Shown: positions 27,608 to 46,706 of the stretch, piece by piece
Layout of the letters: each line of letters begins with the position of its first letter
Numbering within the stretch: the first letter of the stretch is position 1
DNA from: Macrostomum hystrix
Lineage: Eukaryota; Animalia; Platyhelminthes
DNA: 64,000 nucleotides
Direction: 5' to 3'
NCBI GenBank assembly: GCA_950097015.1
Contig: CATNEN010000038.1
Coordinates: 11,780,001-11,844,000 of the forward strand
The notes under the pieces: model-generated
What the model was told of the DNA's origin: nothing
Seen by the model: only the letters and a program-made list of their open reading frames with translations
Databases searched by the model: none
Translations under genes and position numbers: made by a program

Positions 27608-28176
27608 GTCTGTCTGTCTGACTGTCTCTCTGTCTCTCTGACTCCGTCTCTATTTCTTGTTCTCCCTGTCTGCCTATCTCACTATCTGTCTTCATGCTTG
27701 TCTGGCTCAACTTTGTGATCATAGCCTTTCGATTTCCGTCATAATTACCTTTCGCTTGCAAGCTCGTATAGGTGTACATGATAAATAGGAATATGTATTT
27801 ACCATTGCAGGAAAAAAAATAAATGTCATTCTTTGTCTGCCATTTCGCGTTGAAAAACTCCCCAACCAGTTGAACATCCTTCTTCCCTTTAGTTTTTTTC
27901 AGCCTTTATTTCGCACCGCTGCTTTGCTGTACAAGAACGCTGACTTTGGCTGTTAATGTCGCAGTCGTCACTCTGGTGCATGTTCAGAGAGTGAAGCATC
28001 AGGCTGTGGTTGGGCTGGATGGTTCCTTCACGGCTTGCGCACGAACTACTGGTATGGGAAAGAATTCAGAATATAACACGACCTGGTGATTGTGGAACAG
28101 CTGTACAGTACAGCTGTACAGACTAGAATTTTGTCGCTTCTAATGCACATCCCACATACTCGTCTATTCGACTGAA

Positions 28177-28213
<37 letters not shown>

Positions 28214-28902
28214 ATCTTTCTGAATTGTCCCGAAGATTGTGGTAAAGACACACTCTAGAGAAAGAAAGCTGCAGCTGGTGGCGGTGGTGGACGCACACGA
28301 ATGGGGGATATTAGGCTTATAGAGAAAATGCCAATCGCCTGTCTGTTGTGCGCAAGCCAAGTTTCTAGCGCACTTACACGTGTGCTGGACCGTGTTGTGT
28401 GGGTGGAATTGGGGGGCATTGCATACAGTATAGGAGAATCGCTGCTGCGAGTCATCGATCCACGTAGCTAATGCAGGCAGGTCAGGGCCAAATCCCCAAT
28501 ACCTTTTCTCTTTCTCTCCCCTATTCGGGCGCAGCCTCTTCACCTCGCTGCTGGATGAAAAGTTTCTTGTCTCCCCCAGTTCCAGGGGGATCTTTTGCAA
28601 AAGTGGATGAAGTCTCGTTGGGTTTGGGAATGGCAGTCGAATGGGAAGGGGAGAAGGGGTGGCGGTCTGCCGTTTCTGCCAAGTTAAATGTCGCTGCGGC
28701 CCTCTGCTAATTCCGCCTCCTCCTTCCTTCACATCGCAGTCAGCGCATCTCCTCCTTCACCTTCCAACCGTTGTTAGAATTGTCCGCCTTGTCCGCCAGG
28801 CTTTTCGTTGCGACTTAGATTTCGCCGCTCACATAGCGAAGCAGTTTTGCTGAAATTTGCAATCTCAAGTCTTATAGTCAAGGCTATAATCAAATCCGAA
28901 GA

Positions 28903-30588
28903 ATGGACGCCATCAAGAAGAAGATGCTGGTGCTGAAGCTCGAGCGGGAGAATGCTGAGGAAAAGTAAGTTTCGCATTGTGTTTGATATTGATTATTATT
29001 TTAGAATCAGTACGTGACGCAAAGTATGACAGATCATAGTTCATACGAGAAATATAGCTCAAGAACCGATATTCGCTACTAAAAAATGCCAGACAGACAA
29101 GAAAAAACCATTAAGAAGCCAAATTTGTGTCGCCAGAAGGTTAAATACAAGAAACGACTATAAAAGGGAATCGTATAGTAAAACTCTATCACATAAGGGG
29201 ATTTCGCCTTTCATTTAGATTGATATTTTCTCTACAAATATAGTTGTAATAACTATGCAGTTAATGCACAGAGCATATAGAGTTAAAAGTCTAAGGATTA
29301 GTTTCTCTTTTTTTCAAAGAAGAAATAACTGACCTGCGATCTATTTTTACTGTCGAAACCAGGACCACTCAGCTGAATGTCAAGCTGCAGGAAAAGGAGG
29401 CCGAAATGAACAAGAAGGAGGAAGAGATGGGTGAACTTCAGAATAACTTCAAGCAAATGCAAATCAATGTGGACGAAGCGCAGGAGGCTTTGGCTACTGC
29501 TAATACCAACCTCGATGAGACAGAGAAGCGGGCGAGCAACGTAAGTGATTCAATCGCCCTTTTATGCCGGAAAGATATTTTTGTTTTTTCCGTAAAAAGT
29601 TTTCGTTTAGACGAAAATTTAAATGTAAGAATTGTTGCTCCTTTCTAGGAATCATAGTCCGATCAATACATTGTAGGTCTTACCGTCTCTAAGAACTAGC
29701 TAGTGATATCGTGATAGTTGTGTTTCCCATTTTCTAAGCTATTATATTAAAGTCTGGGTAAAATAGTGCTACGGTTTTTTTCGCCTACCTTCTATATAAC
29801 TAATACAATAAAATATATCCAGTCATGTCGATGTCAGCTACCAAGGATGCTCAGGGCCAGGGCCAAAATATTTTGACAACTCTTAAAAACAAGATGCAGT
29901 GTCTTAGGAATGAGCTTGATAAGGTCTCAGAAGATCTAGCTAAAAAAGAGCTTGCTCTTAAGGAAGAGGTTCATTTGCGTGCTCAGGTAATCAAATTAAA
30001 ACTTTAAAGCGTTCATTTTGCTTTGCTTTTTGCCTGGAAATGCAATCTGTCCTATCTATGAAAAGTTGGCCTAAACTTGTACAAAAATTAGCATAGGCAA
30101 AACTAAAAGAAATTAAATACTGGTTTGGAATGTTGATATAATTGTTAACTTCTTGCATGAGAAAACGGTTTCTACTATAACACATTAGATTAGATGTGGT
30201 TAAAATTAAGTTTTAAAAAATCTCTATTTACAGTTTTTATCAAACTAGAGTTAATATTACTTCTTTTCTTAAAGTATCATGAGCAATTTCTTACAAGAGG
30301 TTGTAGCCTAGTGGTTAGAGTATCAGACTCACAACTTGAAGGTTGGGGGTTCGATTCCTGACTCCACTGGAACAATTTGTGTCCTTTAGCAAGACACTCA
30401 ACTCTGCATTGCTTCAGTTCACCCAGCTGTTAAATGGGTACCAGAATCAGCTGGGATAATTGAAGGTGGGTGTGGCGTCCCCCCAGTCCATGGACTGAAC
30501 AGCTGTACGCAGCCTTCAGATGCGCCGCGCAATAGCTGCGGCTGTGCTGTTGGCTGCACATCTGACCCAATTGGGCCAGGTGTAATCA

Positions 30589-30629
<41 letters not shown>

Positions 30630-33600
30630 AAGTTAAAAAGCAAAAAACTTATTATTTGTTTGATTTGGTCAATTGCTTTGACCTAATTGATTCAATAAAT
30701 GAGAATAAGCTAATTTGTCTTTAGTTTTTTAATTTATTTTTTTGTATCAAAATAGCTCAAACAAAAAACCTAGTGATAGATTTAGCATTTTGTTTGTGGG
30801 AAAAATTGTTTGGTGTTGCTACAACCAAAAGCAGCTAATTGGACACTATTGTGTCAGTGTGGCACTGTGAAGGCCACTTTGAAGGGAGCTCGAATCACTA
30901 ACCACCTAGCTACAATATCACTTTTAGGCTAGAAAAGCAAAACTTTATTTCGCTGTTCATTTGCATTATTTGCATATAAATATTACAAAGCTCAGATATG
31001 ATGCATGAAACATTTCCATGCTTCTTTAAACAGGCAGAGGCTGAGGTGCAAGCCCTTACTAGGCGCATTCGTCTCCTTGAGGAGGACCTTGAACAGACTG
31101 AGAGCCGCCGTGCCGAGGTCACCCAGAAGCTTGAGCAGGCTAGCAAGCATGCAGATGAGAGTGAGCGGTAAGCATGTATATCTTTTTATTTATTTGTCTA
31201 TAGCAATGTAGTAATAAGCAATGTACAATGTAATATACTTCTCTATATATTTACTTATCAACGTTTATCTATTTTATTGAATACATATTTAGGAAGTTAT
31301 TAACAATTTTTTACATGATTTAATCTACATGCCCAAGACAGATGCCTTGCCATTTTAATTTTACAATGGATAAGTCTAAATATGTAATTTTGAATTGTGC
31401 ATGAATTTTCAACATTTTCACATATTTGATATCATAAGCCTAAGAATATGAAGTTTCACTTAGTTTATCTACAGTGTTTTTATCTTCATCCAATTGCTAG
31501 AAAGGAAATGGCTTAGATATTCACATATCATTAGTGGTTCTGTTTTCTATTAAATTCACACCAAGAAGTTTCTAACAAGACGTTCGAAAATTGTTTAAAA
31601 AAAGCGGTTTTAATTCGTTTTTTTGCATAATTTAAGTTTTATTACTTGTCAACACTGCAACCAACAAGTTTATTTAACCACCTGTTTGAAATAGTAAAAA
31701 ATACATTAGTCTTATTGCAGCTACCTATTAACCCTTGATCCATTTTTACCCTATTTTCATCTACTGTATTGCAAGCATGAACCAATTGATAGGTCCGTTA
31801 ATCAATTAGTTGTCACACTTAATCCAGCCGTTGCTACCGTTAATCCACCCGTTGCTACCGTTAATCCACCCGTTGCTACCTTAAATTTATCTATTACAAG
31901 CGTTGTTCTATGTTCCGCCACTATTTTGCATAGAGTTTATAAAGTATTATTATTATATATAGTTATTTTTAATTCCCAACCTGACTGGCATGTGCAATCT
32001 TTGTGCTTTTAATTTGCTGTCTGGTTCATTGTGCATGCTTTCGCTAGGCAGCTAAGGTTTCAACTTTAAATTCTCTCCGATTTAAAAAACCAACTTGCTA
32101 AAACTAACCGCGCCCCAGATCTCGCAAGGTCATGGAGAGCCAGCTCAATGCGGTGGAGACTGAGACAACCGGCCTAGAGCAGCGCTTCAAGGACGCCACG
32201 CAGGCCGCTTCAGAGGCCGAAAAAAAATACGAGGAGGTTAGACGCTTAGTGTTCATCCCCGCGCTAGCGGGAATGACGGGAGCAATGTGCTCTGTGGATT
32301 TTAATTTTTTTTTCGTTGAACAATTAATGCAAGCATTTTGTGTTTAATGTGTTCTAATGGTAATACATCTTTTAAGACTTTAATTCGTTCAAAATTTAAT
32401 CTGATTTTTTTCCCGATCCTTCAGGACCACTCTTCCCGATCCTTCAGGATCACTCTTCCCGATCCTTCAGGACCACTCTTCCCAATACTTCAGGACCACT
32501 TTTCCCGATCCTTCAGGACCACTCTTCCCGATCCTTCAGGACCACTCTTCCCGATCCTTCAGGACCACTCTTCCCGATCCTTCAGGACCACTCTTCCCGA
32601 TCCTTCAGGACCACTCTTCCCGATCCTTCAGGACCACTCTTCCCGATACTTCAGGACCACTCCTCCCAATACTTCAGGAACACTCTTCCCAATACTTCAG
32701 GACCACTCTTCCCGATCCTTCAGGACCACTCTTCCCGATCCTTCAGGACCACTCTTCCCAATACTTCAGGACCACTCCTCCCGATCCTTCCTGCCGGCTA
32801 TTTGTTTTGTGTTTTTCTATAGTTTCGTGTCTTTAAAAGCGCACTTTAATAAGATTGTTTAATGTAATTGTTGTGTACAATGGATTTATACTTTTAAGTA
32901 TTCTAATGGGACATTCATTTGGTTAAGAATTGGTAAAGAAGTTTAGGTAGAAAAATGATACTAAAGCCAAATGCGCCAACAATCAACAATGCCAGCGCTC
33001 GCAAACTGCTGGAGACTCGCTCCATCGCAGATGATGAGCGGCTGGGCACCCTAGAGGAGCAGCTTAAAGAGGCCAAGTACATCGCCGAGGATGCCGACAG
33101 GAAGTACGACGAGGCCGCTCGCCGCTTGGCCATCTCCGAGGTTGACCTCGGTCGCGTTGATTCGCGCCTGGAGACCGCCGAAAGGTCCCTAAACCCAAAC
33201 TAGGATTCAAGAATGATATGCTTGATATATTGGCCCCCGCATGGATTTGATGTTCCGTTTTTTAAGGATTTTTTTTTCTTCCGGCTCTCTGATTGGATAG
33301 GTCGGGAGCTAATGAAGCTTTCCGATGGGCTGTCGTTTGGGGGAGGAGCGCGGAGTGAGGTGGGTGCTCGGATTGGACATAATGAAGCTTTCTGATTGGG
33401 TGGCTGACGGTTCGTGTGAAATAGGGAGTGAGGTGGATGCTCAGATGGGAAATAATGAAGCTTTCTGATTGGATGGATGTTTTAGATAGATTGATAGATT
33501 GATAGAGAGTTTTTTGATTGAATTAGCAATAAGTGACCAGTTTATGTTTTAATTCTTCAAGCAGAATCTTTGCCGATAAATATGGCAGATAAATAAGAAG

Positions 33601-36600
33601 AATATTTATTCAGTTGTAATCATAATTAGCTATCAAATTAACTTTATAAATCTTGCAAGTCCTACAATGCCTAGCTGCGCTTGTAAGCCTCGGAAAGTTT
33701 GCAGCTACATTATACACTGTCGCATAAAGTTTACACTTTGTCAAATGATGATGCTTTGGGTCTGGTCTAGTTTTCGCTCGCGCCTGAATACTTTTGTCGC
33801 TGTGTTTTGTGTGCGTATGTATGGCAACACCTGGGCTAGAATGTGGCCTGCGTTTTGTTTCCGAGTCGCGCGACTAAAATGTGTCAGGCAAATTAGCATC
33901 GGTGTCACCGGGGTAGTGGGCGGGCAGCAGGTTCACTAGAGACACAAAGTGAAGCCTGCATTCTGTGTAGGTTGCTGCATGTTATATGTGTTCGGGTCTG
34001 TTTGATGGCTAATGCAGAACACAGACGTGCTAAATTTGTTTTTGGCTACATAAACGCACGCACATGAACTTTTTGTTCTATAATTCTGCAAAGTTTGCTT
34101 TTAAATCCTATATAAAAACTAAATAAATGTTTTTCCGCAACACCTTACTAATTAAAATTTAATTAAATGCGAAACTTAGGTCAGCAGAAAGCAGCGATTG
34201 ACGGAATCCCAGCTCGAGCGGGCAGAGTCGCGAGCTGAAGCCAGCGAAAGACGCGCCAAGGAGCTTCAAGATGAACTGCAGAAGCTGGGCCATAGTCTCA
34301 GATCGCTTGAGGCCAGCGGGGCACAGGTACTGGCTTTAGCTCAGTGCCAGTTTATTATCAGTGAGGTTTGGGTTTAGCTCAGTGCCAGTTTATTATCAGT
34401 GAGGTTTGGCTTTAGCTCAGTGCCAGTTTATTATCAGAGAGGTTTGGCTTTAGCTCAGTGCCAGTTTATTATCAGTGAGGTTTGGGTTTAGCTCAGTGCC
34501 AGTTTATTATCAGTGAGGTTTGGCTTTAGCTCAGTGCCAGTTTATTATCAGTGAGGTTTGGGTTCAGCTCAGTGCCAGTTTATTATCAGTGAGGTTTGGG
34601 TTCAGCTCAGTGCCAGTTTATTATCAGTGAGGTTTGGCTTTAGCTCAGTGCTAGCTTATTATCAGGGAGGTTTGGCTTTAGCTCAGTGCCAGTTTATTAT
34701 CAGTGAGGTTTGGCTTTAGCTCAGTGCCAGTTTATTATCAGGGAGGTTTGGCTTTAGCTCCGTGCTAGCTTATTATCAGTGAGGTTTGGCTTTAGCTCAG
34801 TGCCAGTTTATTATCAGGGAGGTTTGGCTTTAGCTCCGTGCTAGCTTATTATCAGTGAGGTTTGGCTTTAGCTCAGTGCCAGTTTATTATCAGTGAGGTT
34901 TGGCTTTAGCTCAGTGCCAGTTTATTATCAGGGAGGTTTGGCTTTAGCTCAGTGCCAGCTTATTATCAGTGAGGTTTGGCTTTAGCTCAGTGCCAGTTTA
35001 TTATCAGTGAGGTTTGGGTTTAGCTCAGTGCCAGTTTATTATCAGTGAGGTTTGGGTTCAGCTCAGTGCCAGTTTATTATCAGTGAGGTTTGGCTTTAGC
35101 TCAGTGCCAGTTTATTATCAGTGAGGTTTGGGTTCAGCTCAGTGCCAGTTTATTATCAGTGAGGTTTGGGTTCAGCTCAGTGCCAGTTTATTATCAGTGA
35201 GGTTTGGCTTTAGCTCAGTGCCAGTTTATTATCAGTGAGGTTTGGGTTCAGCTCAGTGCCAGTTTATTATCAGTGAGGTTTGGGTTCAGCTCAGTGCCAG
35301 TTTATTATCAGTGAGGTTTAGGTTCAGCTCAGTGCCAGTTTATTATCAGTGAGGTTTGGCTTTAGCTCAGTGCCAGTTTATTATCAGTGAGGTTTGGGTT
35401 CAGCTCAGTGCCAGTTTATTATCAGTGAGGTTTGGGTTCAGCTCAGTGCCAGTTTATTATCAGTGAGGTTTGGCTTTAGCTCAGTGCCAGTTTATTATCA
35501 GTGAGGTTTGGGTTCAGCTCAGTGCCAGTTTATTATCAGTGAGGTTTGGGTTCAGCTCAGTGCCAGTTTATTATCAGTGAGGTTTAGGTTCAGCTCAGTG
35601 CCAGTTTATTATCAGTGAGGTTTGGCTTTAGCTCAGTGCCAGTTTATTATCAGGGAGGTTTGGCTTTAGCTCAGTGCCAGCTTATTATCAGTGAGGTTTG
35701 GGTTTAGCTCAGTGCCAGTTTATTATCAGTGAGGTTTGGGTTCAGCTCAGTGCCAGTTTATTATCAGTGAGGTTTGGGTTCAGCTCAGTGCCAGTTTATT
35801 ATCAGTGAGGTTTGGCTTTAGCTCAGTGCCAGTTTATTATCAGTGAGGTTTGGCTTTAGCTCAGTGCCAGTTTATTATCAGTGAGGTTTGGCTTTAGCTC
35901 AGTGCCAGTTTATTATCAGGGAGGTTTGGCTTTAGCTCAGTGCCAGTTTATTATCAGTGAGGTTTGGCTTTAGCTCCGTGCTAGCTTATTATCAGTGAGG
36001 TTTGGCTTTAGCTCAGTGCCAGTTTATTATCAGGGAGGTTTGGCTTTAGCTCCGTGCTAGCTTATTATCAGTGAGGTTTGGCTTTAGCTCAGTGCCAGTT
36101 TATTATCAGTGAGGTTTGGCTTTAGCTCAGTGCCAGTTTATTATCAGGGAGGTTTGGCTTTAGCTCCGTGCTAGCTTATTATCAGTGAGGTTTGGCTTTA
36201 GCTCAGTGCCAGTTTATTATCAGTGAGGTTTGGCTTTAGCTCAGTGCCAGTTTATTATCAGGGAGGTTTGGCTTTAGCTCAGTGCCAGCTTATTATCAGT
36301 GAGGTTTGGCTTTAGCTCAGTGCCAGTTTATTATCAGTGAGGTTTGGGTTTAGCTCAGTGCCAGTTTATTATCAGTGAGGTTTGGGTTCAGCTCAGTGCC
36401 AGTTTATTATCAGTGAGGTTTGGCTTTAGCTCAGTGCCAGTTTATTATCAGTGAGGTTTGGGTTCAGCTCAGTGCCAGTTTATTATCAGTGAGGTTTGGG
36501 TTCAGCTCAGTGCCAGTTTATTATCAGTGAGGTTTGGCTTTAGCTCAGTGCCAGTTTATTATCAGTGAGGTTTGGGTTCAGCTCAGTGCCAGTTTATTAT

Positions 36601-39307
36601 CAGTGAGGTTTGGGTTCAGCTCAGTGCCAGTTTATTATCAGTGAGGTTTAGGTTCAGCTCAGTGCCAGTTTATTATCAGTGAGGTTTGGCTTTAGCTCAG
36701 TGCCAGTTTATTATCAGGGAGGTTTGGCTTTAGCTCAGTGCCAGCTTATTATCAGTGAGGTTTGGGTTTAGCTCAGTGCCAGTTTATGATCAGTGAGGTT
36801 TGGGTTTAGCTCAGTGCCAGTTTATTATCAGTGAGGTTTGGGTTCAGCTCAGTGCCAGTTTATTATCAGTGAGGTTTGGGTTCAGCTCAGTGCCAGTTTA
36901 TTATCAGTGAGGTTTGGCTTTAGCTCAGTGCCAGTTTATTATCAGGGAGGTTTGGCTTTAGCTCAGTGCCAGTTTATTATCAGTGAGGTTTGGCTTTAGC
37001 TCAGTGCTAGCTTATTATCAGGGAGGTTTGGCTTCAGCTCAGTGCCAGTTTATTATCAGTGAGGTTTGGGTTTAGCTCAGTGCCAGCTTATTATCAGTGA
37101 GGTTTGGGTTCAGCTCAGTGCCAGTTTATTATCTGTCAGGCTTGGGTTTACATTTTGCCATTTTTAAGCAACCAAAATTTGACTCAACAGTAAGAAACAA
37201 TGTTTTTTTATTGCGGATTCCGGCATGCTGTTTGGCTTTGATGTTCGTGAATTTTTTGTCTCTGTGTTTGCTTCTAAGTTTTTAAAAGTCTGATTAAGCG
37301 CTTGTTCTGCTGTTTTCTCCTGTTCAACTTTTCTAAAGCTTTTTTGTAATAGTTCATTGTCGTGCTTTTTGGTTTTTAAATGCTGCCTTTATACGATAGC
37401 CGCTCTCTATAGTACTAGCTGTCGTAATCATAATCAATTGATATAAGCGCTGCACCAATAGCTTGGAGTGACGTCATAACGTTTGATAGCACTGAGTGGC
37501 GTCATATGACATTTAATAGCTCGCAGTGACGTCATATGACCTTCAATTGCTCCGAGTGACGTCATATGAACTTAAAATATTCAGAGGAACGTAATATGAC
37601 ATTTTATGACGCCAGTGACGTCATTTGACCTCCAATAACCCTGAATGACGTCATATTAACTTCTAGCCGTCTTGCGAGTCCCTAAAAAACACAAAAGTCA
37701 GTCCATTTAACAGCAGCAGATGATTATGATAAATAATAATTTGAAAGCAAATCTTAAGCAACACAATTTGCAAACGCAACGAAACCAACTCTGCAGCAAG
37801 ATCCTGGAACTGGAAGAGGAGCTGCGTGTTGTTGGTAGCAACATGAAGTCTCTGGAGGTCTCGGAGCAGGAGGCCGCCCAGCGCGAGGAGTCCTACGAGG
37901 AGACCATCCGGGAGCTGACGGACCGGCTGAAGGCTGTAATTAGACTTGCACTTTTTACTGCAGTACAATATATACTACTTATTATTAGTGTACAACTGAG
38001 TAGTATTCTGAGTAAATTGTCAAATTCTTTCAAGTATTTCTCCATCTGTCTCTCGTTTAATTCTGATTGCGAATAAAAGTGCATTTTTTAACAACCAGAA
38101 TGCATGCTGAGCTTTTCAGTTTTGTTGTGTCTTTAAACAGCCATCTAGCATGCCGGAGGCAGTCAATGGTTGTCTTGTTGAGCTTGAGTCTCAGTAATAC
38201 TAACACGCACCCGCTTGAAAAATCCCAACCCAATTTCAGTCTGTTAATAGAGAGGAATATTACGAAGTTCAAGTGAAGGATCTCACAATTAGGCTGAAGC
38301 AGGTAAATTTATTATTATTATCTAGCTTTTGCATTTTATTTTCGTATTAAAATATTTATTTTGTTGATTTATTGACATTTTCAGCACTAGTGTAGGCATA
38401 GGAGTTAGTAATAATTTCAGCGATTAACCTGCCTGAATTGCGTGTGCTCGCATGCTGAATGCTTTTTTGTGTCATGTGCTCTCTTGCTACTCTTGTTGAG
38501 TAGTGTTTAATGAGTGATTTGCAAAAACTTGCCGACCTGCTGGCCGCCTTCTGAGCATGACGCATCGATTGGACGAGGTCCCCGTTCAGCATCATGACCC
38601 GGTTTTCTTGTCCTGACCCATCCTGACCAACTTGCCACTGTCCTGACCTTTCTCGACCAACTTTTTACAGTCCCTGACCCATCCTGACCTCCTTTTTACT
38701 GACCTGACTCATACTGACCCACTGTTTTCTGTCCTGACCCATCTTGACCCACTATTTATGTCCCGACCTATTGGACCCACGTCTTACTGTCCTGACTCAC
38801 CCTGGCCTACTTTTTACTGTTCTGACCCATCTTGACCCAGATTGACCCAGCTTGACCCAGCTTGACCCAATTTTTACTGTCCTGACCCGACTTGACCCAC
38901 TTTTTCTGTCCTGATCCATCTTGACCCACGTTTTACTGTCCTGACACATCCTGACTCATTGTTTTCTGTCCTGACCCAACTTGACCCACCGTGACCATTT
39001 TTTTACCAAAGCCGTCTGCAACCTTGCTTGGCTTTGAAGTGTCGACTCGCGGGACTCTTTTCTTGTATTAATTCTTCATTTTCTTTCTAAATTCTCTGTT
39101 ATCTTGTTGTCTGAATATTCATCTGTCTTGAAAATCTGTAAGTCTGTAGTCATTCCTCGTGGAATCTTGTTTCTCCTCATTTCTCAAACCCCATTATTCC
39201 CAACAATTTACGCTTGGCGTCGCCAGGCCGAGCAGAGGGCCCAGGAGGCGGAGCGCCAGGTTTCGAAGCTGCAGAGCGAAGTCGACCGTCTGGAGGGTAC
39301 GTCCGAG

Positions 39308-39367
<60 letters not shown>

Positions 39368-42300
39368 AAGAATAAAATAATATATTCAGAATTTTAGCCA
39401 GTTTAAAAAAAGCCCCAAATTACTCGCTGTTATCTATTTATCATTTTTTGTATTTTTTCGGTGGCAGCAATAGGAAATTATAAACAAACAAAACTGGCAT
39501 GTATTTGATGTGCTGCTAATTTTAAGGATCGTTATGCATGTTTTTTGAAAGAATCATTTTTTTCCATAAAATAGTAGTCACTAGAAAAAATACTTTTTAA
39601 AAGATTAACTAATTTTTGCTTACGCATGGAGTTTAGAGTAATCGATTTTGAAAAAGAAACTGCATTTTCTGGAGTTTTTTTATTGCGTAATTATAACTTA
39701 CTATACCTTGTCTATTCTTGCTCTAAAAGACCACGGACAGGGCTGAGACTGTTGAACGAGAGGCCGTCAGACGTCAGAAAGAATTGGAAAAAGCGGAAGG
39801 TACTTAATTAAGATAGTTGAATTCCAAATTTAAGAATTTGTTGTTTAGTGAATCGATTAATTTTATCACTACATAATTTTAATTTTTTGTTGTGATTGTT
39901 AACGCATTCCGTGTCGTTTTAATACCATTTATAATATCGCAGTAGTTAATTATCATTAACGGAAAACATTTTCAAAATATTTATTGCATGCTTATTAGAA
40001 TGCATTTTTAATTATTTTATACGCAATAAGCGTTTTTAGAAGGTAAAAAACACACTAACAAAACATCGATAAAATAGTGCAGCGCTCGCTTGGAGACTGT
40101 GGAGCGGGCTGCTTTAGCGATGCGACAGGAGCGAGACAGAGCGGAAGGCAAGGGCGATTGGTGATGGCTTTTTCTAAAATTCTATAGGCTAGCTTCTGGT
40201 TTATGTTCAGGGTTGAACAAGCTTTTTGCATAGTTAAAAAATTAACTTATCGATTTAAATCAATCTGGTTTTAACCAATATTTTAACGTTTTATTATGCT
40301 GTGCATGTTTGTTTTCTATTGTTAGTCTTTTTTACTATTGGTGCTATTAATGTTGTCTGTGGGTTCTCGTTTATATAGTGCGTCTTATTAGCTCATATTT
40401 ATGCCTTCCCGCTTATCTAATTGGCTCTCCAACCCCCAACCCATTGAAGCCTCCCTCTTATCTAATTGGCTCTCTAACCCCCACCCAATTGAAGCCACCC
40501 TCTTATCTAATTGGCTCTCTAACCCCCAGCCCATTGAAGCCTTCCTGTTATTTAATTGGCTCTCCAACCCCCAACCCATTGAAGCCTCCCTCTTATCTAA
40601 TTGGCTCTCTAACCCCCACCCAATTGAAGCCACCCTCTTATCTAATTGGCTCTCTAACCCCCAGCCCATTGAAGCCTTCCTGTTATTTAATTGGCTCTCC
40701 AACCCCCAACCCATTGAAGCCTCCCTCTTATCTAATCTTATCTAATTGGCTCTCTAACCCCACCCCATTGAAGCCTTCCTGTTATTTAATTGGCTCTCCA
40801 ACACCCAACCCATTGAAGCCTCCCTCTTATTTAATTTGCTCTCTAACCCCCACCCCATTAAATCTTATCGCTTATTTAATTGGCTCTCTAACCCCACCCC
40901 CATTAAATCTTATCACTTATCTAATTGGCTCTCTAAGCTCCACCTCATTGAAGCCTCCCTCTTATTTAATTGGCTCTCTAACCCCCACCCCATTGAAGCC
41001 TCCCTATTATTTAATTGGCTCTCTAACCCCACCCCATTAAATCTTATCGCTTATCTAAATGGCTCTCTAACAACCACCCTATTGAAGCCTCCGTTTAATT
41101 TAATTGTCTCTCTAACACCCACCCCATTGAAGCCTCTCTCTTATTTAACTGGCTCTCTAACCCCACCCCCATTAAATCTTATCGCTTATCTAAATGGCTC
41201 TCTAACAACCACCCCATTGAAGCCTCCGTTTAATTTAATTGGTTCTCTAACCCCATTGAAGCCTCTCTCTTATTTAATTGGCTCTCTAACCCCACCTCCC
41301 ATTAAATCTTATCGCTTATGTAATTGGCTCTCTACCCCACCCCATTGAAGCCTCTTATTTAATTGGCTCTTTAACCCCACCCCATTGAAGCCTCTCTCTT
41401 ATTTACTCCAAGGGCAGCACTTTAGAAATGCATGCCTTCTAAGTGTGACGCCAACGGAACCTTGGACTAACAGCCTGACTCGCTCGCCTAATTGCCTGCT
41501 TTTGTTTTCCCCAAACCGCTTGCAGAGAAGCTGTTGGAAGAGAAACAGCGTAGTGCGGCTCTTAAACAGGAGATGGACGCCATGCTGACGGAATTTCAGC
41601 AGCTTTGAACCTCCCAGCAGCTTCGGAGAGTCCCAAACACTGCGGAAGAATTGTCCCGGTCCACTATAAAGCCAAGTCTAATATTATTAGCTCATTGTGC
41701 CCTGGTGGATTTGCGGACTTCTTTAGAAATCTTCTGAAATTTATTACTAGTTTTTTTTCTTTTGTAAGACGATTTTTTCACATTATCGTGGCAATAATAA
41801 AATTTTTATTCCAAATGGTAGTATGACCTGGAAGTTGTTCTTTAAACAAAAGATGCTTCACGAGATCTACGAGTAATTAGCATTGTTGCTAAGATGATAG
41901 AATTACAAAGCGATCGAATCGCCTAGCAAGATTTTTTTAACTTGAAAAACTTGCTCGATTCTTCGATTAGTTCCATTGTCATTGGTTACTGCTTGGTGTT
42001 TTGTGTTTTCAAGTTTTTTGATGCTCGCTTTTTTTCTGCTTTATCCATATTTTGTTGCTATGCTGTTATTAACTTACTAATATTCGGAATTCCCCTAAGC
42101 GAAAGATTTAATCCTGCGAGAACATTGCCTTGACTTGCATTGCACGCCGTTGTCACCTGTCACGTAGTTCGTTTTAGTGTGCTTTTTGGCTACAATAATT
42201 TGTCTCTATGAGATTGTTTACCTAGAAAGGTATTATTCGTATGTTGTGTAAATCACTTAGTAACTATTAATATGGTGATTAATTTTTAAGCAGCAATACT

Positions 42301-45194
42301 AACTGGTGTTTTCTTACATTGGCAAAATTAGTCACTACTAAATTAGTTTTTTTTTGTGTAACCAATATCTGTTTCGCAGCTGCTATGCTATTTATGATTA
42401 AATTAGCAATAAAATCAATTCCAATGATTCTTTCATTCGCCAATTACGAGCCCGTAAGACTTTTAGCCCTTGTCCCGATAGCCATCACCCACCCCTAAGT
42501 ACACTCACTCTAACCCCCATCACCACCCCTAAGTACACTCGCTCTAACCCCCATCACCACCCCTAAGTACACTCGCTCTAACCCCCATCACCACCCCTAA
42601 GTACACTCGCTCTAATCCCCGTCACCACCCCTAAGTACACTCGCTCTAATCCCCGTCACCACCCCTAAGTACACTCGCTCTAACCCCCATCACCACCCCT
42701 AAGTACACTCGCTCTAACCCCCGTCACCACCCCTAAGTACACTCGCTCTAATCCCCGTCACCACCCCTAAGTACACTCGCTCTAACCCCCATCACCACCC
42801 CTAAGTACACTCGCTCTAACCCCCATCACCACCCCTAAGTACACTCGCTCTAACCCCCGTCACCGCCCCTAAGTACACTCGCTCTAATCCCCGTCACCGC
42901 CCCTAAGTACACTCGCTCTAACCCTCATCACCACCCCTAAGTACACTCGCTCTAACTCACTTTACTAGTAGTATTGATTTTTAAACTAAAACGAGACAAT
43001 AATTATTCCAAGGTGGCAGTCACACGTGTCTTCTAGTAATTATTACTGAAAGTATTCACTTATTTCATTATTTTCACTTGTCATGTAGGGCTTGCTCACA
43101 TATTTTATTTACTCTACTCTGAAGCACCTTTATGAAACATCTTTATAGAAGCAAACCAAATTAATTTGTACATCTAAAATATTTGTTTTTCAGTTTTGAT
43201 ACAGTAACAGAGTATTGGTTAGTAGATATAATAGATTAACAAAAAAGTTTTTCTCGATTCGTATTTCAACTTTTAAATTCCAAATCAAATTTTCTTTTAA
43301 TTTTGAACATTGAAATTTGAAATTAACCTCAATAAACATTTTTTTCTTTTTTTGTCTGTTAATTAGATTTTTATTCGGCTAATTCAATTCAATGTCTATA
43401 TTTTTTCTTTATATGTACATTATCTATCTTCTCTAGCATTAGTACTATTGTACTATTATAAGATTTCGAAGTTAATAATAACGCAAACTACTTTTCAATT
43501 CGTAGCTTATTTATAAATAAGGCACGTTATTTAACCATTTTATAATCCTTACTAATAAACATGATTCCAGTTAGTATTTTTCTGCTTATTTTCGTATTTG
43601 GCTACTAACTAGTAGGCAGTTACCGCCTATGCCTGATTGGTCAGGCTATGCATGAGTTTGCTGTGCGAAAATTTATCAACTTGCGTCACCGAAAAAAAAA
43701 CAGAAGAATATTTTTACTACCCCTATGACTTCATTAGTTGTAGCTGTAAAAATCACGGGACATTGTTATAAGGAGCTGCTACGAACAGGAACCTAATTTA
43801 ACCCACAATGCTGCCGTTTAAAAATCGCCAATTTTTTAACTAGAGAATTGTCTATTCTACCCCTAGAGAATCGTCTATTCTACCCCTAGAGAATTGTCTA
43901 TTCTTCCCCTAGAGAATTGTCTATTCTACCCCTAGAGAATTGTCTATTCTACCCCTAGAGAATTGTCTATTCTATCCCAAGAGAATTGTCTATTCTTCCC
44001 TAGAGAATTGTCTATTCTACCCCTAGAGAATCGTCTATTCTACCCCTAGAGAATTGTCTATTCTACCCCTAGAGAATTGTCTATTCTACCCCTAGAGAAT
44101 TGTCTATTCTCCCCCTAGAGAATTGTCTATTCTACCCCTAGAGAATTGTCTATTCTACCCCTAGAGAATTGTCTATTCTACCCCTAGAGAATTGTCTATT
44201 CTACCCCTAGAGAATTGTCTATTCTACCCCTAGAGAATTGTCTATTCTACCCCTAGAGAATTGTCTATTCTACGCCTAGAGAATTGTCTATTCTATCCCT
44301 AGAGAATTGTCTATTCTTCCCTAGAGAATTGTCTATTCTACCCCTAGAGAATCGTCTATTCTACCCCTAGAGAATTATCTATTCTACCCCTAGAGAATTG
44401 TCTATTCTTCCCTAGAGAATTGTCTATTCTACCCCTAGAGAATTGTCTATTCTACCCCTAGAGAATTGTCTATTCTTCCCTAGAGAATTGTCTATTCTAC
44501 CCCTAGAGAATTGTCTATTCTACCCCTAGAGAATTGTCTATTCTACCCCTAGAGAATTGTCTATTCTACCCCTAGAGAATCGTCTATTCTACCCCTAGAG
44601 AATTGTCTATTCTACCCCTAGAGAATTGTCTATTCTTCCCTAGAGAATTGTCTATTCTACCCCTAGAGAATTGTCTATTCTTCCCTAGAGAACTGTCTAT
44701 TCTTCCCTAGAGAACTGTCTATTCTACCCCTAGAGACAGCTAGTACAGCTAGTGATGTAAGTACAGCTAGTGAGAATTAAGAGTGTATTTTGGTGTGTGT
44801 GTGTGTGTGTGTTTGGTGTGTGTGTATTTTAAGGATGTCATGTGAGTACATCCATTTCATTATAATTTAAGCAACTTAAATTTTGGTATATAGAAATGAA
44901 TTGACTAGAGAATGATAGCTATACAACTGTATAAATCTGGGTGAACTGAATTACCCATGAGGCTAAGAATCGACCTCCTGACCACTGGATCAAATTTATA
45001 GAAATGAGGATCTGGTTAGGTAATAGCTACATGTAGGCGTACAGTTAAAGTGCACGAAGATGCAGAACTCAATTGTAAAAATCTATAAGCTACTCAAAAA
45101 CTGCATCGCAGACGAACTTCTGTCGGAGAAGGAGCGCTACAAGGGCATCAGCGACGAGCTCGACACCACCTTCGCCGAGCTCACCGGCTACTAG
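28903..45194 (+). CDS. TPM: Tropomyosin, long (284 aa) muscle-type isoform (path B)
   Basis: Exons 28903-28964, 29363-29540, 31034-31167, 32996-33184, 37797-37935, 39227-39296, 45112-45194 = 855 nt = 284 aa + stop. Starts MDAIKKKM; contains [60 protein letters not shown]; ends [15 protein letters not shown]. Confidence 0.95.
29825..29986 (+). CDS. TPM: Tropomyosin alternative first exon (1b-like, short isoform)
   Basis: ATG-initiated 54 codons ([10 protein letters not shown]...[18 protein letters not shown]...EEVHLRAQ) ending CAG|GTAATC in phase 0, matching exon 3 at 31034. Resembles the N-terminus of low-MW tropomyosins. Confidence 0.85.
30296..30627 (+). mobile_element. tRNA-derived CORE-type SINE (family A), full length
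   Basis: A box TAGCCTAGTGG, B box GGTTCGATTCC; CORE-like TGTGTCCTTTAGCAAGACACTCAACTCTGCATTGCTTCAGTTCACCCAGCTGTTAAATGGG; (ATT)n tail; multiple copies in the window. Confidence 0.88.
32119..32236 (+). CDS. TPM: Tropomyosin alternative exon 4A
   Basis: 118 nt (canonical exon 4 length), CCCCAG| ... |GTTAGA, phase 2 to 0; [39 protein letters not shown]. Confidence 0.85.
32410..32790. repeat. 23-bp minisatellite (GATCCTTCAGGACCACTCTTCCC)
   Basis: Tandem array between tropomyosin exons 4A and 4B5B. Confidence 0.96.
34180..34326 (+). CDS. TPM: Tropomyosin alternative fused exon 5A+6A
   Basis: 147 nt = 71+76, CTTAG| ... CAG|GTACTG, phase 0 to 0; [49 protein letters not shown]. Not in the ORF track. 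Confidence 0.85.
34331..37133. repeat. 38-bp minisatellite (GCTCAGTGCCAGTTTATTATCAGTGAGGTTTGGCTTTA), ~2.8 kb
   Basis: About 73 tandem units starting within a few nt of the exon 5A6A donor. Confidence 0.98.
37465..37660. promoter_or_regulatory. Degenerate ~30-bp repeat carrying five perfect CRE palindromes (TGACGTCA)
   Basis: TGACGTCA at 37469, 37527, 37557, 37616 and 37646, with degenerate copies between; function not shown. Confidence 0.45.
38240..38302 (+). CDS. TPM: Tropomyosin alternative exon 7A
   Basis: 63 nt (canonical exon 7 length), TTTCAG| ... CAG|GTAAAT; [21 protein letters not shown] aligns with [21 protein letters not shown] of path B. Confidence 0.85.
38595..38995. repeat. Degenerate ~30-bp repeat (CTGACCCATCTTGACCCACTTTTTACTGTC-like)
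   Basis: Repeated TGACCC cores. Confidence 0.85.
39730..39799 (+). CDS. TPM: Tropomyosin alternative exon 8A
   Basis: 70 nt, AAAG| ... AAG|GTACTT, phase 0 to 1; [23 protein letters not shown]. Confidence 0.78.
40078..40147 (+). CDS. TPM: Tropomyosin third exon-8 variant (8C), GC donor
   Basis: Exactly 70 nt between ATAG| and |GCAAGG; [23 protein letters not shown], paralogous to 8A. Confidence 0.65.
40410..41400. repeat. ~46-bp minisatellite (TCTAATTGGCTCTCTAACCCCCACCCATTGAAGCCTCCCTCTTA-like)
   Basis: Tandem array upstream of tropomyosin exon 9d. Confidence 0.94.
41526..41608 (+). CDS. TPM: Tropomyosin alternative last exon (9d-like, non-muscle-type C-terminus)
   Basis: 83 nt after TTGCAG|, phase 1; [33 protein letters not shown] at 41796 and 42408. 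Confidence 0.87.
42485..42957. repeat. 34-bp minisatellite (CACCACCCCTAAGTACACTCGCTCTAACCCCCAT)
   Basis: Direct tandem array. Confidence 0.96.
43840..44736. repeat. 23-bp minisatellite (CTAGAGAATTGTCTATTCTACCC)
   Basis: Direct tandem array. Confidence 0.97.
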
Positions 45195-46706
45195 ACGTAG
45201 CGTTATTAGCTACCAGCTTAGCAACCGCAGGCTAGCCCGAGCTACACCTAGGAGTAGTCTTTGTTTCACTCCGCGAGGAACTGTCAGTGATTATAACAAA
45301 TTATTCGTTAAAAATCTTTTTTACTGCTTCACCTCCGCAATATTATTGAATTTCTGTTTTTTTCGCGTCTCGCTCCAGTTTCAAATTAAAACTTTTTGTT
45401 TAAAATCACATAGTAACTCGCGTTACTTTTTCTTAAAATTTTTCCTATTTAAATCTGGAATCTGGAATCGAAAATTACAATGTAGGACATTGTTCGCTTC
45501 TCACCGGAAATTTGTAATCAAATTGAGTTTTCACTCTCGACCTTCCCCCATTTTTTAGTGCAACCGCTTCTGCCAGATTATCAGTTGAGATCAGACCGGA
45601 GATTGCGTAACAACTGTTATCTGCTAAGATCTAATTTAATAATAGCCTGTACCCCTTGAATGTCTCGCTTTAATGCCTATAATAAACTAACGTTGATTAT
45701 TGAGTTAATTATTATGACTTCTGACTACTGCGTTACTTAGTCGGGGCAGATGTACATGCAGACAGTGGGACAGACAAATACTATGTACAGCTGTTCAGTC
45801 CATGGACTTAAATAGTAGGATCTCTATGAAACTGCAGCAAGTACATTTTTAACTGATTTTAAAGAATGTTAAATTTCATTAACTTCTTTCACACTTGAAA
45901 GTATCAACAAGCAATGCAAAGAAAAATTCTAGCTTGAAATATATCCTTAATTTGGCAGTTTGTAGTGTATAATTCTCATGACCGTTATAAATATTTGATA
46001 AAAATTGACAAAAAAGTTATTTAAAGCTAATGGAGTAATGAAAACAAAAACTTTTGTAAATAGAAAAAAGACGGAATGTATCGCGCGCACAGGTAAAAAA
46101 CAAGCTGATTATATAAGATACAATATTTTACTCGTATTTAATAATGAATCAACCAACAGTCAAAACTATCTATGCACGAGTAGTTTGTTCGCACATAAGC
46201 ACTGTTTTTTCTTCCAACAAACGACATAAAAAGCGGAAAATTGTAAAGCTTTAATATTGTATTGAAAACTAAAATGTAGAACTTTTAGAATGATATTATT
46301 TGGTTTCGATATAGAAACTGTCCGTTTTTGGAAGACCTTTCGATCGACAGTAAATAATGGTCAATATGTAGATTGTAGAAGCTGTCATTGAAAAACGCTT
46401 AGTATAAAATATGCATAGATTAGTATTTTTTACCGCCTGACACCAAGACGGGAATCGTTGAAAATCTCGACGATGCCGACCGATGTTTTGATATTCTGGA
46501 ATTTGTTTTATAAATTTCTTAGCAGAAAATTTTAGCCAAAGAATCGTAGCAGAAGATTCTGGGTACCTGAAATACCCCCTGGGCTTTCTGCTGTTAAGGA
46601 GAGGTCAGTTGACTTGCCGTTTAAAAAAATATTTCTAATTTTTAAGGGCAAAATCCAAATTCAAAATAGAAGCTGTGTTTTAAAAAGGAAAAATTTGCAC
46701 ACTCGC

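Follow-up and report, generated by a model that had tools for sequence, protein, structure and literature searches.

The window analysed here, a stretch of 64,000 nt from the genome of Macrostomum hystrix (GCA_950097015.1, contig CATNEN010000038.1, positions 11,780,001 to 11,844,000 of the forward strand), raises the question of how a single gene can carry two sets of exons whose boundaries do not correspond, and of what keeps the two sets apart during splicing. The locus is a flatworm-type tropomyosin gene on the + strand, extending from approximately 28.7 to 45.2 kb of the window, and it contains two interleaved 'internal paralogs', termed series A and series B below. All exons and motifs are on the + strand and all coordinates are those of the window.

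The initial annotation had proposed two exon paths through the segment equivalent to exons 4-7, and all five of the exons were found exactly where they had been placed, each flanked by AG and GT. Series A comprises exons 4A (32119..32236; 118 nt), 5A6A, which represents a fused exon 5+6 (34180..34326; 147 nt), and 7A (38240..38302; 63 nt), while series B comprises the fused exons 4B5B (4+5; 32996..33184; 189 nt) and 6B7B (6+7; 37797..37935; 139 nt). The alternatives differ in length and are unlike in both boundaries and phases, yet both paths add up to 328 nt, can be read without a stop in the frame that exon 3 dictates, and encode 109 amino acids, without indels between the two. Recomputation of the phases gave phase 0 for the path A joints and phase 2 for the path B joint, at the end of 4B5B, as had been claimed. 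Comparison against the Pfam Tropomyosin profile (PF00261) matched exon 3 to profile positions 37-83 and placed 4B5B (60.7 bits; positions 85-145) and 6B7B (57.4 bits; 147-192) above the 38.6-bit cut-off, whereas 5A6A (37.5 bits; 123-169) and 4A (20.5 bits; 85-122) fall below it at collinear positions. A 38-bp minisatellite of 74 copies (34331..37150; Tandem Repeats Finder) begins 4 nt past the 5A6A donor and occupies most of the following intron. No RNA family was found in an Rfam search of 28000-46000.

The 5′ end of the gene harbors two alternative first exons. Exon 1a (28733..28964; ATG at 28903) belongs to the long, muscle form, with a product starting MDAIKKKM, and is followed by exon 2 (29363..29540), which is used in the long form only. 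Exon 1b (29739..29986; ATG at 29825) is the first exon of the short form and shares 50% identity with short tropomyosin P0022 at its N-terminus. Both lead into exon 3 (31034..31167; 134 nt), which ends in phase 2. Towards the 3′ end, exon 8B (39227..39296; 70 nt) is flanked by AG and GT, and its homology to the eighth exon of long tropomyosins (60-72% identity) suggests that it belongs to the long form, while for exon 8A (39730..39799; 70 nt) both homology and an upstream motif point to the short form. A putative third copy of exon 8 with a GC donor (8A2; 40078..40147; 70 nt) was recognized by sequence comparison, as was a 9d-like terminal exon of the short form (41526..41608), which ends in EFQQL and a stop codon. 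The 9a-like terminal exon of the long form (45112..45194) ends in FAELTGY and a stop codon and is 68% identical to the C-terminus of a Schistosoma long tropomyosin. On the basis of these similarities we infer that 8A and 9d pair with series A, and 8B and 9a with series B. Translation of the exon models then agrees with the two proteins that had been predicted, namely a muscle-type long form of 284 aa (1a-2-3-4B5B-6B7B-8B-9a) and a short, non-muscle form of 258 aa (1b-3-4A-5A6A-7A-8A-9d), which share exon 3 alone. These lengths fit those of canonical tropomyosins (284 aa for long and approximately 250 aa for short forms).

Whether both series are used was assessed with assembled RNA contigs from four public runs (X1-X4), aligned to 28500-34480, with later exons visible as loose ends. 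Six spliced joints were identified, all of them GT..AG: 1a to 2 (28964 to 29363) and 2 to 3 (29540 to 31034), both in 4/4 runs; 1b to 3 (29986 to 31034), from an X1 contig covering 29739-29983; 3 to 4B5B (31167 to 32996), again in 4/4 runs; and 3 to 4A (31167 to 32119) and 4A to 5A6A (32236 to 34180), both in a 424-nt X1 contig. In spliced contigs both first exons therefore lead to exon 3, 1a by way of exon 2, and the contig pieces for exon 1a begin at 28733. The loose end after 34326 in X1 corresponds to the first 30 nt of 7A, and that after 33184 in X2, X3 and X4 to the first 30 nt of 6B7B; a single 980-nt contig incorporates 1a-2-3-4B5B-6B7B. The path A junctions, whose absence would have reduced series A to pseudo-exons, are thus present in RNA, and in X1 the contig 3-4A-5A6A-7A reaches a depth close to that of the B contig of the same run. 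Both series are transcribed and are spliced at exactly the predicted boundaries, in agreement with the proposal of one gene with two exon series of complementary introns. Series A and 1b joints co-occur in a single run, X1, apart from faint traces in X3, and the link between 1b and series A consists of this co-occurrence, as no contig spans 1b, the shared exon 3 and series A. No hybrid A/B joint was found in the spliced contigs over 28500-34480, although assembled contigs drop rare variants. Divergent contigs at 30300-30580 derive from a high-copy dispersed repeat, and an expressed element there was rejected as a feature of the gene.

Tropomyosin genes elsewhere in the genome provide a second line of evidence. 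The staggered layout also occurs in two paralogs (C8 and C1), while a fourth gene (C25) contains series A only, and conserved 63-nt AG..GT exons matching 7A are present in all three. In the three genes with both series, identity between the A and B segments of one gene amounts to 33-51%. Between paralogs, the A exons share 29-59% amino acid identity and the B exons 85-94%, with pN of 0.25-0.46 against pS of 0.63-0.83 for series A and pN of 0.03-0.09 against pS of 0.44-0.55 for series B, which indicates that purifying selection acts on both series. The much greater divergence of the A exons, together with the absence or faintness of series A in three of the four runs, could be taken to mean that series A represents decaying duplicates or splicing noise and that the muscle form alone is real. 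Decay is, however, difficult to reconcile with A exons that are open in all four loci with pN well below pS, with a gene composed of series A alone, with the orthology of series A to annelid short tropomyosins described below, and with the fully spliced X1 contig. This reading is considered highly improbable, and was rejected on the strength of the spliced series A contigs and the paralogs.

The layout is not confined to this locus, recurring both in the paralogs and in the tropomyosin gene models of other flatworms. The Hymenolepis (H. diminuta) model P0278 contains blocks in the order 3, 4A, 4B(5B), 5A6A, 6B7B, 7A, 8B, 8A, 9d, partial versions of the same interleaved order occur in models P0280, P0298, P0285, P0289 and P0079, and gene models of Paragonimus, Schistosoma and Dibothriocephalus show part of it, these orders being read from mis-spliced gene models rather than from genomic loci. 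Judged from the paralogs and these models, the interleaved layout is normal for flatworm tropomyosin genes. One mollusc and one annelid gene model each contain 4+5 / 5+6 / 6+7 blocks. Loci of this type are routinely mis-spliced by gene predictors, which is of relevance to annotation; exons of both series are run together in several database models, taken from tapeworms, flukes, one snail and one annelid. A phylogenetic tree placed series A together with the short tropomyosins of annelids (100/100) and united series B with the long forms of Schistosoma and Paragonimus (97/94). The former grouping implies that the A/B split is old, and suggests an exon 4-7 split common to flatworms and annelids.

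The recurrence of the exon order also bears on the integrity of the assembly. That the region is an assembly mosaic of two tropomyosin genes could be argued only from its unusual layout and its long minisatellites, while against this both series are spliced from one exon 3 and the order recurs at two further loci in this genome and in the gene models of other flatworms. Of all the explanations considered this is the least probable, and it was rejected because of the spliced joints and the paralogs.

The origin and control of the arrangement are best accounted for, with a probability of about 70%, by a two-series gene whose layout arose through exon duplication and intron loss, whose choice of series is made by the promoter or a GCAUG-binding factor, and in which the frame clash is passive. 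Exons 4-7 would have been duplicated singly, so that the copies lay as A B, B A, A B, B A along the genome, after which three introns (4B/5B, 5A/6A and 6B/7B) would have been lost to produce the staggered 'brickwork'. Only these three could be lost, because they held no exon of the other series, and the staggered boundaries that resulted would mean that single exons were no longer exchangeable.

An alternative holds that the complementary intron losses were selected as error-proofing, with frame incompatibility and nonsense-mediated decay (NMD) as the chief enforcers of an all-or-none choice. The four hybrids listed in the initial annotation (4A to 6B7B, 4B5B to 5A6A, 4B5B to 7A and 5A6A to 6B7B) do all shift the frame, and 19 of the 21 mixed A/B combinations are prematurely stopped. 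Three paralogous loci have furthermore retained the layout, as have cestodes and trematodes, and the three fused boundaries all lack a GT, which leaves no latent donor. The crossover from 6B7B to 7A had been overlooked, however; it is in frame in the exon models and underlies the remaining two combinations, such that this joint escapes the frame lock and some other mechanism is needed anyway. Moreover, the frame already keeps ordinary exon pairs (118, 71 or 76 nt) safe from double inclusion or skipping, and the layout follows from loss limited to introns empty of the other series' exons. Selection for error-proofing is consequently viewed as an unlikely explanation. Under the passive reading preferred here, the A/B choice would probably be made earlier than any frame check, and frame incompatibility would serve as a safety net rather than a switch.

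Two routes to such an early choice are envisaged, the first being the promoter, with 1a set against 1b, and the second an Rbfox-like GCAUG-binding factor. The latter was proposed because GCAUG precedes nearly every A exon and almost no B exon within 300 nt. A motif scan of the window identified TGCATG 87 nt upstream of 4A (32032..32037), 204 nt upstream of 5A6A (33976..33981) and 139 nt upstream of 7A (38101..38106), the last also lying 166 nt downstream of 6B7B, as well as 194, 92 and 96 nt upstream of 8A, 8A2 and the 9d-like exon, respectively. The motif is thus found upstream of 6/6 A-series exons and 0/5 B-series exons in the window. When the paralogs are included, GCATG occurs at most 300 nt upstream of 11/12 A exons as opposed to 1/6 B exons. 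Against a background of 0.29 per 300-nt window, the binomial probability is 1.2e-5, and Fisher's test gives 0.004. This bias suggests a single-factor switch, with the A/B choice possibly under the control of one factor. Given the position rule known for Rbfox and its abundance in muscle (PMC11874969), the factor would silence the entire A series in tissues that contain it, such as muscle. The A-only paralog retains its upstream GCATG motifs, which fits repression in muscle, yet a signal that purely chooses between series would not need them. Two crude searches of this genome for an Rbfox gene, one with the Fox-1_C profile and one with a degenerate, back-translated RRM motif, found nothing, both being weak across introns.

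Competing RNA structures could in principle make the same choice, either by intronic docking/selector pairing or by looping 6B7B out on a stem, a mode known from mutually exclusive exon clusters of some arthropods. A 19-nt inverted repeat does surround 6B7B in the window and a 28-nt inverted repeat surrounds it in C1, where the score is reached by 0/100 shuffles. The pair in the window is nevertheless within chance (15/100 shuffles reach its score), as is the best pair in C8 (29/100 shuffles), and no pair is conserved between paralogs. As the C1 pair alone exceeds the shuffles, an RNA-structure switch was rejected as a general mechanism and is regarded as improbable, well behind selected error-proofing, while a promoter or GCAUG-dependent choice remains the favored reading.

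A bolder combination of these elements would see the fusions as an ancient, selected 'gear-lock' of flatworms, and perhaps other spiralians, that made two indivisible cassettes out of combinable exon pairs, with one GCAUG-binding factor silencing the seven-exon short series in muscle. We consider this speculative and rather doubtful, but if it were true the gene would constitute a natural model for the long-range coordination of many splice choices per transcript. Little is understood so far about how distant splice choices within a single pre-mRNA are coordinated. The locus offers a clean natural case, in which the choice at seven alternative regions is made jointly, with mismatched boundaries as a hard structural constraint and a simple candidate signal in GCAUG, which is retained upstream of series A in the four paralogs.

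The closest known systems are the flatworm genes tpm-1 and tpm-2, for which Koziol et al. 2011 (Mol Biochem Parasitol 175:181) and Alvite & Esteves 2009 (Gene 433:40), cited in PMC4015340 and PMC3342872, are said to describe a single gene with alternative promoters that yields two isoforms, a muscle isoform of high molecular weight and one of low molecular weight, with most exons reportedly duplicated and used exclusively and one exon common to the isoforms. The M. hystrix gene resembles these in its long and short isoforms from one gene and in its interleaved order, and genes with a single series exist too, C25 being an example, while the species and the set of paralogs (four loci here) differ. 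For internal tropomyosin paralogs, up to 77% of the transcripts is said to derive from different DNA; in the present gene the corresponding share of the long and short transcripts is about 83-84%.

The general principle of exon sets specific to long and short tropomyosin forms has already been published. In the account given in PMC3342872, duplicated tropomyosin exons are each assigned to one of two promoter-defined isoforms, and the internal paralogy ('MATEs') of Irimia et al. 2010 (Mol Biol Evol 27:1504) is summarized there as recurrent, independent duplications in many lineages, with further duplication and reciprocal loss splitting both series into separate genes in some cases. The M. hystrix gene shares with these the tandem exon copies, each attributed to the long or the short isoform, but where that summary has independent duplications, the tree obtained here hints that flatworms and annelids have the exon 4-7 split in common. 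Internal tropomyosin paralogs are not a new concept, and what is gained is a well-documented, RNA-supported example and a testable regulatory hypothesis.

Similarity to Rbfox/(U)GCAUG control (PMC11874969) is seen in the motifs, which cluster at up to 300 nt upstream of exons expected to be silent in muscle, with some located downstream of muscle exons; the likeness is one of motifs alone. In vertebrate TPM1, the 6a/6b and 2a/2b exons are likewise homologous tandem copies that are never included together, and double inclusion or skipping breaks the frame. The vertebrate pairs are, however, equal in length and boundaries and can be combined with one another, whereas the staggered exons of the M. 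hystrix gene lack single counterparts and the whole series is exchanged.

Five middle exons of the tropomyosin gene, encoded on the + strand, are found at exactly the coordinates proposed in the initial annotation, all of them flanked by AG and GT: 4A (32119-32236), 4B5B (32996-33184), 5A6A (34180-34326), 6B7B (37797-37935) and 7A (38240-38302). Along the DNA, exons of series A (4A, 5A6A and 7A; short form) alternate with those of series B (4B5B and 6B7B; long or muscle form), and each series totals 328 nt, open in the frame inherited from exon 3. Exons 4A and 5A6A match the Pfam Tropomyosin profile at positions 85-122 and 123-169, and exons 4B5B and 6B7B at positions 85-145 and 147-192, respectively, these collinear matches indicating that the exon 4-7 segment is encoded twice. 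Tropomyosins retrieved in a profile search that started from exon 5A6A served as queries in local tblastn searches, which placed the remaining exons on the same strand, namely exon 1a (ATG at 28903, end at 28964), exon 2 (29363-29540), exon 1b (ATG at 29825, end at 29986), exon 3, which is common to both forms (31034-31167), exons 8B (39227-39296) and 8A (39730-39799), and two terminal exons, one 9d-like (41526-41608) and one 9a-like (45112-45194). Exon 8 has one further copy, 8A2 (40078-40147, +), which is 70 nt long, open and AG-flanked, with a GC donor and a TGCATG motif 92 nt upstream. With exons 8 and 9 chosen by homology, local translation of the models 1a-2-3-4B5B-6B7B-8B-9a and 1b-3-4A-5A6A-7A-8A-9d yields products of 284 and 258 aa, the sizes originally predicted for the long and short form, with exon 3 accounting for about 16-17% of either coding sequence.

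Sampled words of positions 31000-39000 are present in four public RNA runs (X1-X4), available as assembled contigs, at 6-10%, which approximates the exon content. The contigs, aligned over 28500-34480, skip introns at GT..AG, indicating that the material is spliced RNA, and show no mismatches in the exons. Joints between exons 1a and 2 (28964/29363), 2 and 3 (29540/31034), and 3 and 4B5B (31167/32996) are present in all four runs, and those between exons 1b and 3 (1b/31034), 3 and 4A (31167/32119), and 4A and 5A6A (32236/34180) are found in X1. From 6B7B onward the exons are visible only as loose contig ends: past 34326 an X1 contig extends for 129 letters, of which the initial 30 match the start of 7A, and past 33184 the X2-X4 contigs extend for 247 letters, whose initial 30 match the start of 6B7B. 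The path A junctions are found spliced in the X1 contig as 3-4A-5A6A-7A, and a single 980-nt contig runs through 1a-2-3-4B5B-6B7B and beyond. Exon 1b and series A joints co-occur in X1; X3 shows faint traces of them, and X2 and X4 show none. Over 28500-34480, no joint was observed between 4A and 4B5B, from 4B5B to 5A6A or its interior, or between exon 3 and 5A6A in the contigs of X1-X4, which, as assemblies, lose rare variants and are interrupted at exon 3, the exon in common.

The two series also differ in how they carry the reading frame. Exon 3 ends in phase 2; phase 0 is reached after 4A, with the lengths of 5A6A and 7A being multiples of three, and in series B phase 2 is kept by 4B5B and phase 0 brought back by 6B7B. 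The five middle exons can be combined in 32 subsets, eight of which keep the frame, and only the pure A and pure B sets give the full 328 nt. A premature stop was computed for 19 of the 21 series-mixing subsets, and the two stop-free mixes both contain 6B7B joined in frame to 7A, with 21 additional residues. The hybrids initially listed as frameshifted, and proposed there to be eliminated by NMD, do shift the frame, but this in-frame 6B7B-7A joint had been overlooked. A latent GT donor was found at none of the three fused boundaries.

We suggest that the staggered arrangement could have arisen if exons 4, 5, 6 and 7 had each been tandemly duplicated, with their copies in the order A B, B A, A B and B A, respectively. 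Under that order, the only introns free of exons of the other series would be 4B/5B, 5A/6A and 6B/7B, and these are exactly the introns that are missing. As each of the kept introns contains an exon of the other series, its loss would be impossible without deleting that exon; only the empty introns could go, so that a frame lock need not have been selected for to explain the staggering. Either series would nonetheless be welded into one indivisible unit.

In the 220 Mb M. hystrix genome, where the window corresponds to C38:11780001-11844000, paralogous loci on contigs C8 and C1 harbor the same six exons as the window, identical in order and lengths. A fourth locus, on contig C25 (L015:6137-8981, L016:80-815; G000:C25:3476137-3480815), contains series A only (4A, 5A6A and 7A), with no 4B5B; in the place of 6B7B, a 27-aa stretch shares 63% identity with the 6B part, with similarity lost beyond it. 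This locus looks to be a gene for the short form alone, in which an exon of series B is decaying. Between paralogs, series A shares 29-59% protein identity (pN: 0.25-0.46; pS: 0.63-0.83) and series B 85-94% (pN: 0.03-0.09; pS: 0.44-0.55). In both, pN is lower than pS, showing that both series are under purifying selection, and by these comparisons series A evolves faster than series B. Among the C38, C8 and C1 gene pairs, dS of the B exons (0.66-0.98) is far below that of the A exons (1.4 to saturated), a gap that could stem from codon bias in the muscle form, which is highly expressed, or from gene conversion between B exons.

Exon order in other species was inferred from database gene models, several of which read through both series and thereby make the exon blocks and their order visible. 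The Hymenolepis diminuta model (3, 4A, 4B(5B), 5A6A, 6B7B, 7A, 8B, 8A, 9d) follows the order of the window, parts of which can also be recognized in models of H. microstoma, Paragonimus, Schistosoma bovis and Dibothriocephalus. Furthermore, in a model of the snail Batillaria a 4+5 block (62 aa) precedes a 5+6 block (49 aa), and in one of the annelid Paralvinella a 5+6 block precedes a 6+7 block. Models from tapeworms, flukes, a snail and an annelid (P0278, P0280, P0298, P0285, P0289, P0079, P0023 and P0003) mix exons of both series, with translated intron between exons or cryptic joins into 5A6A, and these public models are annotation errors resulting from the staggered gene architecture. In a midpoint-rooted tree of the 109-aa segment (109 columns), series A of all four M. 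hystrix loci clusters with short tropomyosins of the annelid Helobdella (100/100), and series B with long forms of Schistosoma and Paragonimus (97/94) and next with mollusc and annelid long forms. This points to an A/B split predating the flatworms, the tree being suggestive, not conclusive, given its 109 columns, midpoint root and fast-evolving series A.

(U)GCAUG motifs were sought in the window and the other three loci. TGCATG occurs in the window 87-204 nt upstream of 4A, 5A6A, 7A, 8A, 8A2 and 9d, and none was found upstream of exons 2, 4B5B, 6B7B, 8B and 9a. Across the four loci, GCATG lies at most 300 nt upstream of 11/12 A exons versus 1/6 B exons, with a background of 0.29 per 300-nt window (binomial P: 1.2e-5; Fisher P: 0.004). 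Rbfox proteins are GCAUG binders abundant in muscle, and their binding upstream of an exon typically represses it, while downstream binding activates (PMC11874969). Combined with the location of GCAUG upstream of the A exons, this position rule suggests that one such factor could silence the whole of series A in muscle, making an Rbfox-like factor a candidate for the switch. Crude searches of the genome, weak across introns, gave no match to an Rbfox gene.

A switch based on RNA structure is unsupported, the inverted-repeat pairs flanking 6B7B in the window (37219-37237 / 38139-38157) and in the C8 paralog being within chance in a shuffle test. In the C1 paralog, a 28-nt inverted repeat around 6B7B (L013:8274-8301 / L013:9191-9218) is 82% complementary, and 0/100 shuffles reach its score.

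Several repeats lie in introns of the gene. A 38-bp minisatellite (34331-37150; 74 copies, 95% match) starts 4 nt past the 5A6A donor and takes up the bulk of the intron between 5A6A and 6B7B; every unit contains a donor-like CAGTGAGG. Further tandem arrays in other introns are located at 32410-32790 (23 bp x 16.6), 38609-38989 (30 bp x 12.8) and 40407-41405 (45 bp x 22). The intron between exons 1b and 3 harbors a dispersed high-copy repeat (30300-30580) with 3778 first-look candidates in the genome; the 40 copies that were scored share 94-96% identity along the entire 281 nt. The many divergent RNA contigs that it attracts, at high depth, give it the look of a young SINE- or MITE-like element transcribed in many contexts. 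TGCATG shows a strong strand bias over the whole window, with 30 copies on the + versus 7 on the - strand, only 11 of the former being inside the tropomyosin gene. Also encoded in the window are a cyclic-nucleotide phosphodiesterase exon (20186-20842, +), an exon with a rhomboid domain (47214-48137, -), for which the nearest atlas clusters come from flatworms, and a Tc1/mariner-type transposase ORF with DDE_3 and HTH_Tnp_Tc3_2 domains (54978-56066, +).

The presence of two exon series in the window is confirmed, and their interpretation as interleaved, phase-locked paths, with the RNA support, is essentially right. Flatworm tropomyosin genes reportedly give rise to high- and low-molecular-weight isoforms with one exon in common, and some of the duplicated planarian genes are said to be reduced to one series. 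According to a review, tropomyosin exons underwent duplication in most bilaterian lineages, with the copies assigned to one of two promoter-defined isoforms (PMC3342872). In cestodes, the high-molecular-weight isoforms encoded by tpm-1 and tpm-2 are restricted to muscle (PMC4015340). The aspects of the M. hystrix locus that deserve experiments are its staggered exon fusions and GCAUG pattern, and the locus itself belongs to a known class, the flatworm tropomyosin genes that contain internal paralogs for the long and the short form.
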